Shown here: positions 38,381-53,089 of the stretch, piece after piece
Layout of the letters: each line of letters starts with the position of its first letter
Numbering within the stretch: the first letter of the stretch is position 1
From: Klebsormidium nitens
Lineage: Eukaryota; Plantae; Klebsormidiophyceae
Length of the DNA: 64,000 nucleotides
Reading direction: 5' to 3'
NCBI GenBank assembly: GCA_000708835.1
Contig: DF237090.1
Location: forward strand, 112,462 to 176,461
The notes under the pieces: model-generated
Told to the model about the DNA's origin: nothing
What the model saw: only the letters and a program-made list of their open reading frames with translations
Database searches by the model: none
Translations under genes and position numbers: made by a program

Positions 38381-43179
<4,799 letters not shown>

Positions 43180-44709
43180 GCTTAGAAACCTTGTACAGAG
43201 GTAGCCCGCCAGCATTCCACGTACTGTAAACTGACGTCATACTGCTTCAACCGAGGCCTGCTTTTGATGAATTGAAACGGAACAAGGCCCAAAATAACTC
43301 AACGTGCAAGGTTATTCAACGGGAGGGGTCGAAAGAGTTCCCTTGTGCTCTAGTATACGTGGTGCGGTCGGATGCATACCTCGTAAGCATACCGAGCCTG
43401 GTATCTTTTGCATCCTCATAAGGTGGTGGCCAAGCATTTAACCTTCGTGTTGATGAATTATGGTCGGTTGCATGCTTGGGGATATTAGCCATCGTATGGC
43501 TGGTTTGCGCCCCCTGTTTCAGAGCTAAAATCCACTCATCAGGTTCAGCACTTTAAGATCATCGGTGATGAGTGAAGGCTATCCTTGTCATTCGCATGTG
43601 AACACGACTGAAATATCAATAGTGGACTAGGAAAATGATAAAAGAAGCATGACTAATACGAAGAGGATTGTATGAGTATGAGCACGAGGACTCAAGGCTC
43701 TGACCACCGACTCTTCAAAATGTGTCACAGACGCACTGCAGACACTTAAGGAGGACATCGTGAGAAAGTGATCATACGCCCGGATTCAACCTTTGACTCA
43801 CGGTCGCTTATACAAAAGCCACATGGGGTGGCAGATTGCTCAGCTTGACGGGCAGTCAATGCCCGCGTTACGTAGATGTTGCTGCGAACCACATGGGGTA
43901 GACGCCCCCACCAAATGCGACGCGAAAGGATTGAGCTTAAGACTTAGTCGGCTTGCAAGGTCGCCTTGAATTCAGATCTCAGTGTTCATTGGCAGTAGAC
44001 TAATCTCATACTAATAAGGTGCGTTCAGAATGCCGTAAATCAGTAAATCCATTCATATCATGATATATCATCGTCATTCAAGGATTCAAGTCGAAGGTAG
44101 TCACGACTCACTGGACAGATGGCTGACGTCAACCCGGCAAAGAAGGTTCATGCCGGTCATGAACCTGGGTCTGCCAATCGTAGCCGTCCAAGTGAGCACG
44201 ATCCGATCGCGAGAGGCACAATCGGGCTAGGGGATTGGAGCCCCGGGGCGAGCCTCCGAGCCATACCGTAGTCCAAGTCCTCGGCCTCCCAGATTTTCCA
44301 GGCTAGCCGGTAGGCAGCTAGGTACGGTGTACGACCGTGTACCTACTTTACCTTGTCCTATACACTAAGGTATTTAGGTCGCCACTACAGGGCTCTGGAG
44401 TCTAGACAACGGCTCCAGTCTAACGGTCCCAGCAAATTGCACGTGCATGGTCTCGTCAAATCGGACGGCTTTGTAAGCGTTTTGATCAAGGATCGACGGT
44501 AGATGATAGCACCAGATGAGTCCGTTCTGAAGAAGTGGTCGGTAGAACCTACCAGGCCGCAGCTTGAGATCTGCTGCTGCGGAATCCGAACCTGTCGTCT
44601 TGCACTTGCGCAGGCTCATTTGGCACCAACTTCGGAAGCAGATTCTACAAATTGCAGCATTGAACAGGCGCAGCTCAGCATTGCGCTCAGGCAACCCGTA
44701 GCCACCATC

Positions 44710-47700
44710 ATGGCGGAGTCGGGTACTAACTGGGCCCGAGCGTCCGGTTCCCTCGTCATCGTCTTGTTGCTTGTGGGCCTCGTTGGCTCCCAACTGCTGG
44801 CGTCCGAGGAGCAGCCGCAGCTCCTAGGTCGCAGAAGCCTACAAGAAAGTGTCCGCCGGTTCCTAGCAGTAAACGACATCTACGTGTTGAACAGCACCTA
44901 CGATGTGAACACCACCAGTGTGACTGTGGTTGGGACCGCGATTGGGCCCAACGCCAGTGTCACAGGTTACTGGAGCACAAGAGGCAGGCAGATCTTGGAC
45001 TTCTATGGAAAGGAGGTGAGGGCCTTGTTTTGTCCTTGAACTTCACATTTTTGATGGTGAGCCTTTGTTGGACATACCAGGTGCGACCTCGGAAAGCAGA
45101 GAAGTTCGACGTTTACGAGGTTGCAAGGGAAGTACAGTGACCCACAGAGCCACCCACAGAGCAAGTCTGAACTGGGGAATCTCTTGTGGAACTTTAAATT
45201 GGCCACTTGAGGCTACCAGACTTCTCATTTTACCTTTGAAGTGTATGTCTGATGTCCTTGTGTCTTGGCTGTTGCACTTATGGGTGTGGGTATGAAGGGT
45301 GTAGATCTTGGGTTCCTAGTCATCTCAGAGCAAGATTTCTACACCACCTTTTGTGGTGGCAACTTGTCTGCAAGTGGCAACTTGCTTTGCAAGGAAATCT
45401 GAAAACACTCTGGGCATACTGCAAGTGTGCGCTTGGTATGCCTTGCATTTCTGACAAGATATGCCGTCCTTCGCGACACTACTGTAAGGGTCTTGTGAAA
45501 AGTCTGGAGTCTGGAGAAAGTACGACACTGTCAGCCGCTTTTCTCTGACTTTTTTTGGAAGGTCCGCGTGGTTCCTTTTCTGAGATGAGGGGTTTTACCG
45601 CCGTCCCTATAAGTGACGTGGACCCACATTCCCCCTTCTTTGACGAGGAGGAGGAGAAAGTTCATGGCCATCGTAGTAGGCCTGGGCGCCTCATCAAGCT
45701 TCTGTGTTTTCTCGCCTTCTGCTGGCCGCTCCTGCTTTTGTCTCTCTGCTCGAACTGCGCGATCCATGAAAAGGCAGACTGGCTGGCCCATGTTGTTCTA
45801 GGAAGAAAGTTTACCCGGCTGCCTGCCAGAGGTGACGGCTGGTGGACTGCGCACGGCAGGGCGCTGGTCGACCAGTACGGAGACGAGGTGTGGCGCCGCT
45901 GCACCAGGGGCACAGCCCCAACTTAAATTAACAGCCTAATCTTAACCGCTTGCCAAACTTAAACACAGGCATTTCCTGCGGTGGTGGTTTGAGAGATGCT
46001 CATGTTGTCATCAGGGGCAGTGCTCCGCTGACATAGTCAAAAAAGTCCTCTGGTTCTTTGCACAAAAGCGGCAGGCTGGGTGGTCACTTTGTCAAATGCA
46101 AAGGTCTCTTTTGCTTTACGGTCCGCTGCAGGGCTTTCAGTGAGGAAGCTCGGAGAGTCCAATTTCACACGTTCACACTTTTTGGGGGACAGAGTTTTCA
46201 CGGTTGTGTGCCAGCATAGTTGAGTCACACCTCGGTCCCTTCCACAAAGTCTAGTAGAGCCCCTTGAACGAAATGGCTGCTCACTCCAAAAGCGGTTTCT
46301 CAAACAGAGTATTTTCGGAGATCTCCTTTTTAAGAACTATTTTGCACCGCTACACCAAAGCGCAGTCCCCTTTTTGGCGATGGGGCGGTGCCCAGTGGTG
46401 GCGGGCAGGGTCAACAGGATGGCGCTCGGAGCGCTTCGCAACGTATGATGGCCCTCGTAAGCAACGCCTAAGTGTCCTGCCTGCAGGTGTTTTTCTCCGG
46501 CGTGAGCTGGAACGGGCTGGAGAACATCGACGGCGCCCCCCACGGGCTGTGGGCGCGCTCGTGGCAGTCCATGCTCGACCAGATGATTGGCCTCGGCCTC
46601 AACGTACTGCGGCTGCCCTTCTCTGGGAGCATCCTGGCGGGGGGGTACATGCCCCAGAACATCAACTACTACGCCAACCCAGATCTCAGGGTGAGCGCCT
46701 TTGGGGGAAGGATGGAGATCGTCGACGAAGTTCGAATCTCCTTCTCATGGACCTAAGCAATGTTGAGGACGCGGCGTTTTCACACTGCTCGGTCTCGCCT
46801 GACGTTATCGTCTGGGCTGCTTGTCTCAAGCTGGCAGGAAACATGTGGTAGGGCTTGCACATTTTAGGAAAGCTGTTGCTGCAGAAAGGTGTATTTGGGG
46901 GCTGTCTTGGCATGGAGGTCATTAATATTGTTCCCTTGTAAAAGTCCACCGTGACAGGAAGGGCTCAGGAAACTGGCGGTCGCCGCGCATTTTCTTCGTG
47001 CATCAAAACCATAGCTAAACAAAGCTTTTTGTTGGAACTATTTTTCCGGTATCTTGAGTGGAAGCCATGGAGTCCCCAGAATCAAGAGTCTCGTTCCTAT
47101 AAGGACAGTGCGTTCTCAAGGTGAAAAAAGTAGGCCACATAATTGCGATGAGCTGCAAAAGGAATAAGAAAGTGCCTTTTCGCCCTGACTTTAGCCAACG
47201 TTTTTGAGCGAATCATCTGGTGGAAGACTCGTTAACTCTTGCTGTAGCAATGCTGTGTCGGATCTGCTTTAGGTTGGAAGGATTAACCTCCAATTGCGCG
47301 TTGCTGGTTGGCTAACCAGGGTCGACTTCATTCTCTATAAATCAGCCACATCCCTTCCCCTCTTCATCCGTGCTCCGAGCTGCCCACTGAACCTGTCGTC
47401 GATGTTGCAGAACCTGACTTCCCTCCAAATCATGGACGTGATCGTGCGGGGCGCGGGTGCCCGCGGCATGAAGGTGTTCCTGGACTACCACCGCCTGAAC
47501 GCAGGCTATGAGCACGAGTGGGGCCTCTGGTACGACGCCAACACGTCCGAGACGCAGTGGATCAACAACTGGCTCTTCCTGGTTGACCGCTACAACAACG
47601 ACTCCACTGTTGTGGGGGTGAGCCGGCAACACGGATTTGGTGCGCTAGGTTGTTCATGGCCCTCACGCCTGTTCATGGCCGCCTGCCGGCACACAGTTGC

Positions 47701-49578
47701 CCGGCGCATGATGGTTCCGTCGCATGTGGTGTGTTTGACGTCGATAACATCGGTGCTCGACAAAATCGGTGCCAAGCGTTTCGGCCGGCTTGCGGCCATG
47801 TTATGTAACGGAAGTATCTGGTGTTTCGATTGCACGCCTGTGTCGATATCAGCTTCCAAGGTCAGCCAGCTTGGAGCCCTAGTCAGCGGTCGATGTTTTA
47901 GGGGCCGGAGTCTGCTTCGACCTGATCTGATCCTACCGCCTTCTAGTTGTTGACATGTGCTGGCTTGCTGCAGGTGGACCTGTTCAACGAGCCCCATCAC
48001 GACGAGGCCAAGCCGCCCGGCCACCTGGGGCCCGAGTGGGCGCCGGACGGCGTCAACGCGACCATCAACTGGAGGACGTCCGCAATCAGGTGAGACACGG
48101 CAGGATGCGCCGAGATGTGCTTGCTTGTTCTGGGGGACACGGTCCAAAAGAGTCGAAGGAGACAGGGGACATATGGTCGATTGTCATGAGGTCAGAGCCG
48201 TGCTGTTCAGTTCGTACCAGTTGCATGGTACCTTGTGCCTCCAATGCAGGAACCATGGGTTCGAGAACAACATTTGCTCAATGTCGACAACGCTCGATGA
48301 AAGAACACGGAGCGTCGGAGGTCGTGGTGTTGACCAGCGAGCCAAAACATCCATTGCCGTGTGTCCGCAGGTGCGCCAACGCGATCCACAAGGTGAACCC
48401 CAACCTGCTGATCGCGGTGCAAGGCCTGGACTTATACCGCGGCCAGTACGGCCTGTGGGGCGGTGTCTTTTTGGGCCAGCTGGACGCGCCGCTCAACCTG
48501 ACCGTCCCCAACAAGCTCATCTTCCAGACGCACGACCTGGGGCCATCCACCTTCAACCAGGTGCGCCGCTGCGCTGCTGTCTCGGCATTCAAAGATGGCA
48601 AAGCGATGCCAGCTGGCAGTCCAGGATTGACCTCTTTTTGCGTCGGCTTGACAATGCGTCTGCCTGGAACAGTCGTTTTTGGCTGTCAACATTGTCCCAG
48701 GATTTGGAACCACGATGCACCACCTTCTCTGCGCTTGCGTGCCTTTTTCCAGGTGTGCCGTCTGCATTGGGCCGCAAACGCTCTCTTTGTTGTGACCGGC
48801 CATGTTCGACATTGCATGCGCCTCTTGCTGACCGTGCTCGTTTGGCTTGTGCCCGCAGTCGTACTACAACGCGCCCGACTTCCCGTCCAACCTGCCGGCG
48901 CAGTGGGATCGCATGTGGGGCTTCCTTTGGGACCGTAACATCACTCCCGTCTGGGTCGGCGAGTTCGGGGCCAAGTTCGACCCATACTGCACCAGCGACC
49001 GGTGCGCGGTCGTCTTCAGGCAAGAGGTGGGTTTCCGTGCGCTGCGCAATCGCGTTCGCCCCTCCCGTTCTCAGATTGTCCCAAAAGTGCCTGCATCAGG
49101 GAGTTCGTATGGTTCCTGCTCCTTGCTCTTGCGCCCCAGTGCCAAGCGCCCCAGTGCCACGCGCCAGGCTGTGCAGGCCGCGTTTGGCGCATGATGAAAG
49201 TGACGCGGAACCAAAGTGAGTACTACGAGAAGGCACCGGTATACTTCGTATAAGTCATTCCGTCCCGCGGGCTCTGGCTGATACACAAGCGTCGGTGCTT
49301 CTCCTGTCTGGGCTGTGCGTAATGAGGGTTCTCGGTGCGGCGCTGTGCAGCAACTGTGGCTGGGCGAGCTGGTGCGGTACATCCAGAACAAGAGCCTGCC
49401 CTGGACGTGGTGGTCGTGGGACCCGACGTCCGAGGACACGGGCGGCCTCCTCGCGGACGACATGCAGACGCTGCGCGCCGACAAGTACGCCTACATCCAG
49501 AACCTGACATACCCGGGGTTCAGCATCCGGAACGCCTCCACCAGCCTGCCCACCGGCATCCGCACAACCGGGGCGTAA
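44710..49578 (+). CDS. GH5 endo-beta-1,4-glucanase (GH5_1-like), secreted isoform using exon 1A (472 aa)
   Basis: Exons 44710-45015, 46487-46690, 47411-47617, 47974-48089, 48371-48560, 48859-49026, 49351-49578 give HGLWARSWQSMLDQM..NVLRLPFS, DYH, acid/base DLFNEPH, nucleophile VWVGEFG and WTWWSWDPTSEDTGGLL. An N-terminal hydrophobic signal is present. Confidence 0.92.
45585..45887 (+). CDS. Alternative first exon 1B of the GH5 gene (cytosolic tail, TM segment and first beta-strand)
   Basis: ATG at 45585 opens 101 codons ending GWWTAHGRALVDQYGDE|gt at phase 0. This is homologous to the exon 1A end GYWSTRGRQILDFYGKE|gt and in frame with exon 2. Confidence 0.68.
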
Positions 49579-50803: not shown

Positions 50804-53089
50804 ATGCCGAAGACGCCTAGGACTCGATCACGGGCCTCTCACAGTTCTCTCAGCACGCCATATGCCAAGAGGTCAAAGTCAGATGTTGAGGATACGGCAG
50901 GAAGCGTGGGCGGAAAGGCTGACGCAATAGGCCTGGATGAGACAGAGCTGTGGGAAGTAACTCGCTGCTGCATCTGCCTGGAAAGCCCTCACAACGGGGT
51001 GCTCTTGCTCTGTGCCTCATCAGATCGTGGCTGTAGGCCCTATGTTTGTGACACGTCAGCGAGGCACTCCAACTGCCTGGATACTTACAAGAGGACAATG
51101 ACCGAGTGCGTCGAGGTGGAAGGGAAGGAGAGGGAGTTTCGTCTGCCATGCCCGCTCTGTAGGGGAACAGTGACTGGGCAGAAGATCAACAAGGGTAGGT
51201 TCTTCTTCGTAAGGTTCTTGATATGACAGATAGCCGCTGCCTGCTGACCTTGCTCCGCGTTGCAAAGATGACAAGAAGGGTTCACAAAGCCAGCTCGTAG
51301 GCCTCCTTCAGATCTATCATTTTAGGAACCCTAATTTTACGAAGAGCCGCTATAGATTTCTCGGATGCAGAGTTTGCTGCTTCTTGCAACTGCTGATTGG
51401 CACTCGCCAAGCATGCGCAGGTCCTATGTGTGTTGCGGTGGTTGAAGAGGCCTTATGAAAAGCACATGCTGAGTCTATTCAGCTCATGAGGAGCTCCTCA
51501 GAAGTTTTTGTGAACTCTCAAAGACAGATTGGCGATCCATTCACAACAGTCAGAGCACCCTACTATGCAACATCTCTGCTGCACCTTCTTCATTTGGTCC
51601 ATAAGACACGTCCGCTAATGAGCGTTGCCTCTTTCAGCCAAGTTTCGCAGCCTCTTGAGTCAATGAGTCAGTCCCTTGTTTTCACTGGTCTGTATCCTCT
51701 GGCTATCTCAACATTGGAAGAAGCAAAGAACCAAGCTGTACATGGCCAAATCATGTCTTCTTAATTGCGCTTACGTTGTGTGCGTTAGGCAGACAAGTAA
51801 CCAGAATCAACGTTTTGAAACCCTTTATTTGAGTGGCTTCCGATCTACTCTTCTCTTCCTCCCAGGTGCACGTCACTACTGGAACCAGAAAGAGAGACCA
51901 TGCGCAAAGGAGTCATGTAGTTTCAAGGCCAAGTACACCGCTCTTCGCAGGCATGCTCGGAAGGACCATCCCAATGATCGCCCCACAGAAGTAAAGCCGG
52001 AGCAAGCTCAAAGTTGGCAGCGGGCCGAGAGGGAGCGCGAGATGCAGGATGTGCTCAGTGCTGCTTTCAGCGGGCCAAATGGGGAGCCCCAAAACGCGGA
52101 GCCGGAGTCAAGAGGGTGGACGGTGTACTTTTTATTTCACATGCTGGACGGCGAGATTGGGGGGTTCAGTGTCGCGAGGCGGTTCGTGATGGGGCCAGGC
52201 CCAGCTAGGAGAGCATCACGGCAGCAATTGTTGTGAGTATTCTTATTGCAGGGCTGTCCTGATGATGAACTGGAAGACGAGTAGTGGTGTTTCGAACCCT
52301 GATCTCGTCATTTGCATAGTTTGGATACTGTTGCACTTTTCACAAAGCAAGCAGCTAAGTTCAATTTCATAGTTATCTCCTCTGTAGATTTCAATAGCTG
52401 TTTCGCAGATAATCTGCTTCTGGCACCGACGATTTGCTGTCTGTGGCATACATCGGTCCATCTCTTTGTTTGCTTGCTGCTAGGATGGGGATGTAGTATT
52501 CTGCTTCGGAACCGTGGTGCTTCACTTGGTTAGCTGAGATCACAAGAAAGTCGTTGCTAATGCAAACAGAACGACTCGCTCATCAGAACTTGTTGTCATG
52601 TGTAGGGAGATGACGGCAAGTCCCGACAGCGAATCAGAGGATTACTCAGAGGACGAGGCTGAGCAACAGCCCGTTGCTCCGCCAACCCACCACTACTACA
52701 CACGCAGCCGGCAAGAGGCCCCGCAGGAGACTCAGCCAACGGACAACTCTGGCGCAGGCACTGCTACAGTGCGTCAGCAGGGAGAGGCAACCGGATCTGC
52801 AGGGCACCAGCCGGCATACAGGACTCGGAGTGTCGGTCTTGGGGAGACCAGCCACCAAAACGGACTCGACGGCGCGGAGGAGACGGGTCTGCCTTTGTCA
52901 TGGAGAGGGGTTTCGGGTGCAGGGGGTGTTGGTGGCCGTCGGCTGCGACGCTTGGGGAGGTTCCGACTAGTTGAGGAGGTCAATGCAGAAGCCGAAGAAT
53001 CTGAAGCTGCAGGGACGAGATTGGGGTTAAGAAGCGACCAAGGAGGTGCAGGAAGTACAGGGGATGAAATGGAGGAGACGGCAGATTAA
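50804..53089 (+). CDS. DUF1644 plant RING-like zinc-finger protein (3 exons)
   Basis: Exons 50804-51194, 51866-52232, 52606-53089 give CCICLESPHNGVLLLCASSDRGCRPYVCDTSARHSNCL..CPLCRGTV..ARHYWNQKERPCAKESCSF..LRRHARKDHP..RP..W.R.ERERE.QDVLS. Confidence 0.9.

Follow-up and report, generated by a model that had tools for sequence, protein, structure and literature searches.

Plant endoglucanases of glycoside hydrolase family 9 (GH9) are partitioned into enzymes that carry a transmembrane segment and enzymes that carry a signal peptide (PMC5977491). Family GH5 is represented among membrane-held plant enzymes by the Arabidopsis transmembrane-type GH5_7 mannanases AtMAN2 and AtMAN5, which have a transmembrane domain in place of a signal peptide, are retained in endomembranes and are required to make glucomannan (PMC13181414). 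A need for membrane-held hydrolases in polysaccharide synthesis is becoming apparent, and in plants the membrane-anchored and the secreted wall hydrolases are encoded by separate genes. Here we describe a gene of the alga Klebsormidium nitens, located on the + strand at positions 44710-49578 of a 64,000-nucleotide stretch of contig DF237090.1 (referred to as the window, with its first letter as position 1), in which one bacterial-type GH5 catalytic domain seems to serve for both kinds of enzyme by way of a conserved swap of exons. The gene is a seven-exon GH5 endoglucanase gene whose first exon exists in two versions, termed exon 1A and exon 1B, each of which joins the shared exons 2-7. We consider it probable that these two conserved and interchangeable first exons allow one gene to produce both a released and a membrane-bound enzyme, with the latter made by means of an internal promoter. 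A search of the literature returned no description of this algal gene, nor of any GH5 gene with alternative first exons.

Among published GH5 enzymes, AtMAN2 and AtMAN5 come closest to the proposed 1B membrane form. These enzymes differ from the algal one in being GH5_7 mannanases rather than an E1-like GH5_1 glucanase and in being encoded by separate genes, and localisation and mutant phenotype have been shown for the plant enzymes only. Plant GH9 enzymes of class A (KORRIGAN) and class B are also comparable to the proposed 1B and 1A forms, respectively, in that one class of enzyme activity is found both in a type II membrane version with a cytosolic tail and in a version with a signal peptide. 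However, their family is GH9 and not GH5, and their two forms are the products of separate genes and not of alternative first exons. In addition, the role of KORRIGAN in cellulose synthesis is experimental, whereas any such role of the algal enzyme would be conjectural.

Two further systems resemble the algal locus in gene structure rather than in enzyme family. In UGT1A and in the clustered protocadherins, tandem duplicated first exons encode the N-terminus (a signal or anchor together with part of a folded domain) and are spliced exclusively to shared exons. The algal gene has the same arrangement of alternative duplicated first exons and shared downstream exons, but differs in that UGT1A and the protocadherins have many first exons that vary the substrate or recognition domains while topology stays constant, whereas the two algal exons appear to exchange the part that directs targeting, with a hairpin of 17 residues as the only duplicated piece. 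The yeast SUC2 invertase gene yields a secreted and a cytosolic enzyme from two transcripts, and is thus also one glycoside hydrolase gene with products in two locations by means of alternative 5' ends. SUC2 merely omits the signal peptide, however, while the second algal exon supplies another targeting module and a duplicated structural element.

Use of both first exons is seen in RNA contigs from four public runs (X1, X2, X6 and X11), bearing in mind that contigs may drop rare forms and cannot show transcript starts. The four runs are plainly RNA, as every intron is removed at high depth; all introns of the gene are GT..AG introns and each is removed exactly by spliced contigs of these runs. 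A preliminary description of the locus had proposed from the letters of the DNA that exons 1A (102 codons) and 1B (101 codons) both join exon 2 at 46487 in phase 0 and in frame, and its exon coordinates, codon counts and joins proved exact to the base. It had also named 45015-46487 and 45887-46487 as the two junctions to look for in RNA, and both were found among the contigs. The former, which joins 1A to exon 2, is present in all four runs at depths of 975, 309, 489 and 123. The latter, which joins 1B to exon 2, is present in X1 only, at a depth of 12.2 or ~1.2% of the 1A form. Thus, the 45887 donor (GAG/GTGTGG) is spliced to 46487 and exon 1B is transcribed. The X1 contig that carries the 1B joint is 605 nucleotides long and runs unbroken from 45310 to 45885, through the 1B ATG to the donor, before continuing with 29 nucleotides of exon 2. 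The 1A contig ends 29 nucleotides into exon 2 in X1 alone and extends 205 nucleotides into it in the other runs. That both X1 contigs stop at the same place is the mark of two paths converging in an assembly graph, which argues for real junction reads. No joint between 1A and 1B occurs in the contigs of the four runs. With both joints to exon 2 observed, the suggestion that the two exons are mutually exclusive is upheld, and none of the three outcomes set out beforehand as fatal to it (an unused 45887 donor, joining of 1A to 1B, or an untranscribed 1B) was encountered.

With respect to the start of the major transcript, the spliced RNA contigs all begin downstream of an in-frame ATG at 44503. 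One of the runs, X6, is filed under a second organism name, and its contigs carry one extra T in a T-run at 45549, 36 nucleotides upstream of the 1B ATG. They are otherwise identical to the window, so that both organism names probably refer to a single species or strain group.

Exon 1B also has the properties of a selected coding exon in a comparison with one other lineage. A word search with 1B retrieved two open reading frames (ORFs; P0001 and P0002) on metagenome contigs that are 65-68% identical to it. The contigs of this related alga (L001; L002/L003) were found to carry the whole orthologous gene with both first exons in the same order. Its 1A-like exon has 66% amino acid identity to that of the window (L001/L002), its 1B-like exon lies ~580 nucleotides further on and its exons 2-7 are 88-94% identical. 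The two versions of the relative's gene, L001 and L002, have a silent-site difference of ~8%, with exons that are 93-99% identical and introns that are 80-91% identical. In both first exons of the relative the ATG, the frame and the GAG/GT donor are kept, so that both are conserved as coding exons. Alignment of window DNA with that of the relative recovers the exons alone and the introns not at all, and within intron 1 exon 1B forms an island of conservation (45637-45890) that ends three bases past its donor.

The pattern of differences within this island is that of a protein-coding sequence. Exon 1B has a nonsynonymous divergence (pN) of 0.18-0.19 and a synonymous divergence (pS) of 0.75, and its differences are distributed over the three codon positions as 25/14/52 (chi-square p 3e-6). 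Exon 1A has a pN of 0.22, a pS of 0.65 and a distribution of 29/16/54, and exons 2-7 have a pN of 0.04-0.09 and a pS of 0.31-0.53. The only indels that separate the 1B exons of window and relative are one of two codons and one of one codon. Because pN is much smaller than pS, third positions are in excess and indels are of whole codons, 1B is a selected coding exon, with purifying selection shown on both first exons in two lineages. The residues that would be read past the 1B donor differ completely among three sequences. Since the frame is not conserved beyond that point, selection acts on 1B as a spliced exon and not as a free-standing ORF. Two other accounts of 1B were tried and rejected. 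One was that 1B is a separate small gene, which does not agree with post-donor tails that differ in the three sequences or with DNA conservation that stops at 45890. The other was that the signal of selection comes from an antisense ORF, which does not agree with the third-position bias in the + frame.

These same data bear on the possibility that 1B is a decaying duplicate, or pseudo-exon, and that the 45887-46487 joint reflects noisy splicing of pre-mRNA at a cryptic donor. The 1B joint is scarce and comes from one run, other introns also leave low-depth contigs and the GC content of third codon positions (GC3) in 1B is 0.65, which is far under that of exons 2-7 (0.88-0.96). However, the same intermediate GC3 is found in the major exon 1A (0.72), and 1B has retained its frame, ATG and donor across a divergence over which introns no longer align. 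When this is taken together with the low pN, the third-position bias, the whole-codon indels and the end of conservation at the donor, we regard a pseudo-exon as very improbable. Silent divergence from the relative is also ~1.5-2 fold higher in the first exons (pS 0.65-0.75 vs 0.31-0.53). The gene models of the alga miss the selected 1B isoform. An exhaustive profile search with the 1B alignment against 1.84 billion protein representatives returned the P0001 cluster only, and no annotated full-length protein with a 1B end. Its absence from annotated proteins is no proof of lineage restriction, as unannotated intronic exons of other algae lie outside that library.

The likeness between 1A and 1B is confined to their last 17 residues, of which 8 are identical and 12 are similar; the 1A end of the window and the 1B end of the relative share 10 of 17 (E 2.8e-4). 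The preliminary description had interpreted these ends as homologous copies of the first GH5 strand. The duplication holds, and the identification needs one refinement, in that the element is a two-stranded N-terminal hairpin in front of barrel strand 1, and strand 1 itself lies in exon 2. A position matrix was made from the equivalent 17-mer of 12 distinct bacterial homologue sequences (13 loci) and applied to every stop-free 17-mer of the window (78,423 in all), where the 1A end ranks first and the 1B end fourth. The element is present in every one of the bacterial homologues, directly before a G-V-N-W-F-G strand. In a model of one of them, L012 (mean predicted local distance difference test score 80, with 77-90 in the hairpin region), it consists of short strands at 56-59 and 62-65, followed by barrel strand 1 at 74-77, which corresponds to exon 2. 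Residue 3 of exon 2 aligns to residue 23 of the endocellulase E1 from Acidothermus, so the 17-residue element falls inside the crystallised catalytic domain.

By these measures the two first exons have homologous ends, each of which is best described as the N-terminal beta-hairpin found ahead of barrel strand 1 in the GH5 domain. Joining the exons to one another would duplicate this hairpin. The orthologous hairpins of the two algae are identical at 15 of 17 positions (1A) and 12 of 17 positions (1B) vs 8-9 of 17 for the two copies inside one gene; thus, the duplication predates the split of the two algae. A search for DNA repeats between 1A and 1B gave chance-level short matches only, and the duplication is visible at the protein level only. 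Pfam and solved-structure searches with 1A alone and with 1B alone yielded nothing significant, which leaves the targeting parts without known relatives.

Upstream of the hairpin the two exons encode very different N-termini, and the motifs noted at the outset are all present: a signal-like hydrophobic stretch, LLGRRSLQE and three N-glycosylation sequons in 1A, and FFDEEEEK, a basic patch and a hydrophobic span in 1B. The 1A product begins with an N-flank of 8-10 residues that is followed by an uncharged run (17 residues in the window, 22 in L001/L002) with a very hydrophobic core of 11 residues. After this run come small residues, an acidic stretch and then GRRSL with the sequons (NST at 61, NTT at 67 and NAS at 81), of which there are two or three across window and relative. 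This looks like the layout of a cleaved signal peptide with a hydrophobic core of 12-15 residues. The GRRSL sequence, which contains an RRxL motif and would be a candidate processing site, is unchanged between the window, L001 and L002; at P2 it has a serine, where S1P/subtilase RRxL sites usually have a hydrophobic residue.

The 1B product has a longer N-flank of 35-38 residues that contains the basic patch HGHRSRPGR and, in the window, the acidic FFDEEEEK. The motifs D-E-E-E-K and H-G-H-R-S-R-P and the hydrophobic core are invariant in the three sequences. In the window the span itself is a run of 18 residues, none of them charged or strongly polar, and across the sequences it is 18-22 residues long, with a net charge of +4 in the 15 residues before it and of -1 to 0 in the 15 residues after it. 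For such a charge distribution the positive-inside rule predicts an N-in, C-out orientation, and 1B is accordingly predicted to be a type II membrane anchor. There are no sequons in 1B and many in the catalytic exons, which fits a lumenal or extracellular location of the catalytic domain. The shortness of the span and the arginine and acidic motifs of the tail would be compatible with a 1B form in either the plasma membrane or the Golgi/endoplasmic reticulum (ER).

The N-terminus of 1A can also be read in a different manner, with both isoforms membrane-anchored and 1A serving as an uncleaved signal anchor that has next to no cytosolic tail, in which case the exon switch would change the tail and span and hence sorting, for example between the plasma membrane and the Golgi/ER. 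The 19-residue hydropathy maximum of 1A equals that of 1B (2.3 vs 2.3), and its uncharged run reaches 22 residues in L001/L002 (17 in the window). Tail motifs of the acidic and the arginine type can act as sorting signals, and the tail of 1B has invariant versions of both (DEEEK and HRSRP) in front of its short span. Yet 1A has a classic signal-peptide layout that consists of a short N-region, a core of 12-15 residues and small residues (G, S, A) that suit signal peptidase, and it continues into a conserved, glycosylated linker that contains GRRSL, as though the protein were secreted and processed. For these reasons we hold a pair of membrane-anchored isoforms to be unlikely.

In the mechanism that we favor, each first exon would supply its own start codon, targeting region and hairpin copy, and would be spliced in phase 0 to exons 2-7. 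The major form, made from 1A, would be directed into the secretory pathway by its short N-region and hydrophobic core, followed by its glycosylated linker, and would probably be released to the wall. The minor form, made from 1B with a transcription start site inside intron 1, would have a cytosolic tail, a positive flank and a hydrophobic span that together act as a type II anchor, and would hold the same catalytic domain outside of the cytosol. A second promoter or start site would be situated in 45016-45584, because the 1B ATG must be the first usable one and a transcript from the 1A promoter that reads through the 1A donor runs into a stop at 45039.

Several observations weigh against this mechanism. 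The 1B joint was assembled in only one of the four runs and at a very small fraction of the main form. At the ratio seen in X1 the expected depth of 1B in the other three runs is about 1.5-6, which is near or below the threshold for a contig, so its absence from them says little. Retained-intron contigs of similar depth also exist elsewhere in the gene; for example, the last intron (49027-49350) is retained at depths of 18.4 in X1, 6.7 in X2 and 6.1 in X6, or ~1-2% of the spliced form in these runs, and low-depth unspliced contigs (depth 2-5) are present over the rest of intron 1. The 45887-46487 joint could also come from transcripts of the 1A promoter that keep 45016-45887. The possible 1B leader contains upstream ATGs at 45292, 45438 and 45461, and the uncharged run of 1A, at 17-22 residues, is long enough for an uncleaved anchor. 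Finally, in both species the 1B ATG is immediately preceded by an AG (45583-45584 in the window; 9999-10000 in L001/L002), which may be either start-codon context or a weak acceptor that makes 1B an in-frame cassette.

Were this acceptor to be used, 1B would not be a first exon but a 303-nucleotide cassette exon between 1A and exon 2. The sequence in front of the ATG (ctgag/ATG in the window and ttaag/ATG in L001/L002) allows for this, the length is a multiple of three and the 1B frame is open from 45549. There is, however, no 45015-45585 joint in the four runs and the X1 contig is unspliced through 45585 from 45310. The six real acceptors of the gene are all CAG, vs GAG or AAG at the putative cassette acceptor, and coding conservation begins at the 1B ATG. 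The cassette product would additionally have two hairpins, and its span with a positive N-flank, placed behind a cleaved signal peptide, would leave the sequon-rich catalytic domain in the cytosol. We therefore consider a cassette exon very improbable and retain alternative first exons as the preferred description of the locus.

The catalytic domain, as judged from profile and structure matches of its individual exons, is a GH5 endoglucanase whose nearest relatives are bacterial enzymes of the GH5_1 type, among them endocellulase E1 (1ECE). It is not a GH9 catalytic domain of the KORRIGAN type, with which it could share no more than the mode of action. In a scan of the PF00150 profile that was run exon by exon with a cut-off of 23.5 bits, exon 3 scored 28.9 bits and exons 2, 5 and 6 matched the collinear profile positions 10-56, 151-202 and 208-250, each scoring below the cut-off alone. 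Exon 2 aligns to E1 residues 23-88 (E 5.8e-16) and exon 6 aligns to E1 residues 249-288, which places the glutamate of its GEFG motif at E1 position 282. Exon 3 ends at E1 residue 156, and by collinearity the glutamate of the FNEPH motif in exon 4 is at E1 position 162; exon 4 alone gave no match in a search against solved chains. We take E1 positions 162 and 282 to be the catalytic residues. Both catalytic glutamates are then present, and the enzyme therefore looks active.

The top solved-structure matches of exons 2, 3 and 6 are 1ECE (Acidothermus E1), 8FC0 (CelE2), 2ZUM/2ZUN (the Pyrococcus horikoshii endoglucanase EGPh) and 4TUF (the Xanthomonas major endoglucanase), and the algal domain is provisionally placed nearest to GH5_1 by these best matches to solved structures. 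Structure 2ZUN is the representative of GH5_1, a subfamily that was described in 2012 from archaea, bacteria and symbiotic protists only and nearly all of whose members were endo-beta-1,4-glucanases (PMC3526467). A genome paper counts eight endoglucanase genes in K. nitens, which are given without detail (PMC7027972). While 1ECE and EGPh are the best solved relatives of the algal exons 2, 3 and 6, they are prokaryotic and intronless with a single N-terminus, whereas the algal gene has six introns and two N-termini. A metagenome scan with exon 2 returned 13 loci (L004-L016) with bacterial-type GH5 ORFs that read without introns and are 45-60% identical. A word search with exon 3 had as its sole match the relative's own exon (P0003) and gave no third lineage. 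It is possible that the alga acquired the gene from bacteria long ago and that the six introns were gained afterwards.

A membrane-held endoglucanase is located beside cellulose synthase in plants (KORRIGAN) as well as in bacteria (BcsZ). By extension, the rare 1B form might serve as the active, membrane-held endoglucanase beside the alga's cellulose synthases with the 1A form remodeling the wall, so that one locus would switch a catalytic domain between building the wall and loosening it. We put this forward as a speculation that is distinctly unlikely to hold as stated; if true, such a switch would be found in an alga of the streptophyte line, near the point from which land plants arose. The two-exon gene offers a compact and testable system. 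The coordinates of its features are collected in Table 1.

Table 1. Features of the GH5 endoglucanase gene in the window, with joints given as donor and acceptor positions.
Feature	Position	Strand	Remarks
5' leader of the major (1A) transcript	44612..44709	+	spliced RNA contig starts: 44612 (X2), 44643 (X11), 44713 (X6)
Exon 1A, coding part	44710..45015	+	102 codons, ATG to GAG, then GTGAGG
Hairpin copy A	44965..45015	+	last 17 codons of 1A
Intron stretch predicted to hold the 1B start site and leader	45016..45584	+	
Exon 1B, coding part	45585..45887	+	101 codons, ATG to GAG, then GTGTGG; alternative to 1A
Hairpin copy B	45837..45887	+	last 17 codons of 1B
Exon 2, shared	46487..46690	+	barrel strand 1 onward; preceded by CAG
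Exon 3	47411..47617	+	joints 46690-47411 and 47617-47974 in 4/4 runs
Exon 4	47974..48089	+	NEP acid/base glutamate; RNA joints
Exon 5	48371..48560	+	PF00150 positions 151-202; RNA joints
Exon 6	48859..49026	+	nucleophile glutamate (GEFG)
Exon 7 and TAA stop	49351..49578	+	joint 49026-49351 in 4/4 runs; 88% identity to L001

The neighbors of the gene are also recognizable. Upstream (42516-43179, + strand) is a glyceraldehyde-3-phosphate dehydrogenase (GAPDH) gene whose last exon encodes a CP12-like C-terminal extension of the GapB type (PF02800, E 7e-13; PF02672, E 2.9e-5), and downstream is the first exon (50804-51193, + strand) of a gene for a DUF1644 protein (PF07800, E 2e-25), which is a plant family. 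Together these two neighbors point to the green lineage, and probably to a streptophyte alga. The GapB last exon is the only non-GH5 stretch of the window that aligns to L001 (positions 291-442, 81%), so the order of the GapB and GH5 genes is kept in the relative. There, the spacer between the two genes contains ORFs of reverse transcriptase, integrase and Helitron-like type (L002/L003 1-4568; L001 2697-5857), which extend it to ~8.7 kb vs ~1.5 kb in the window.

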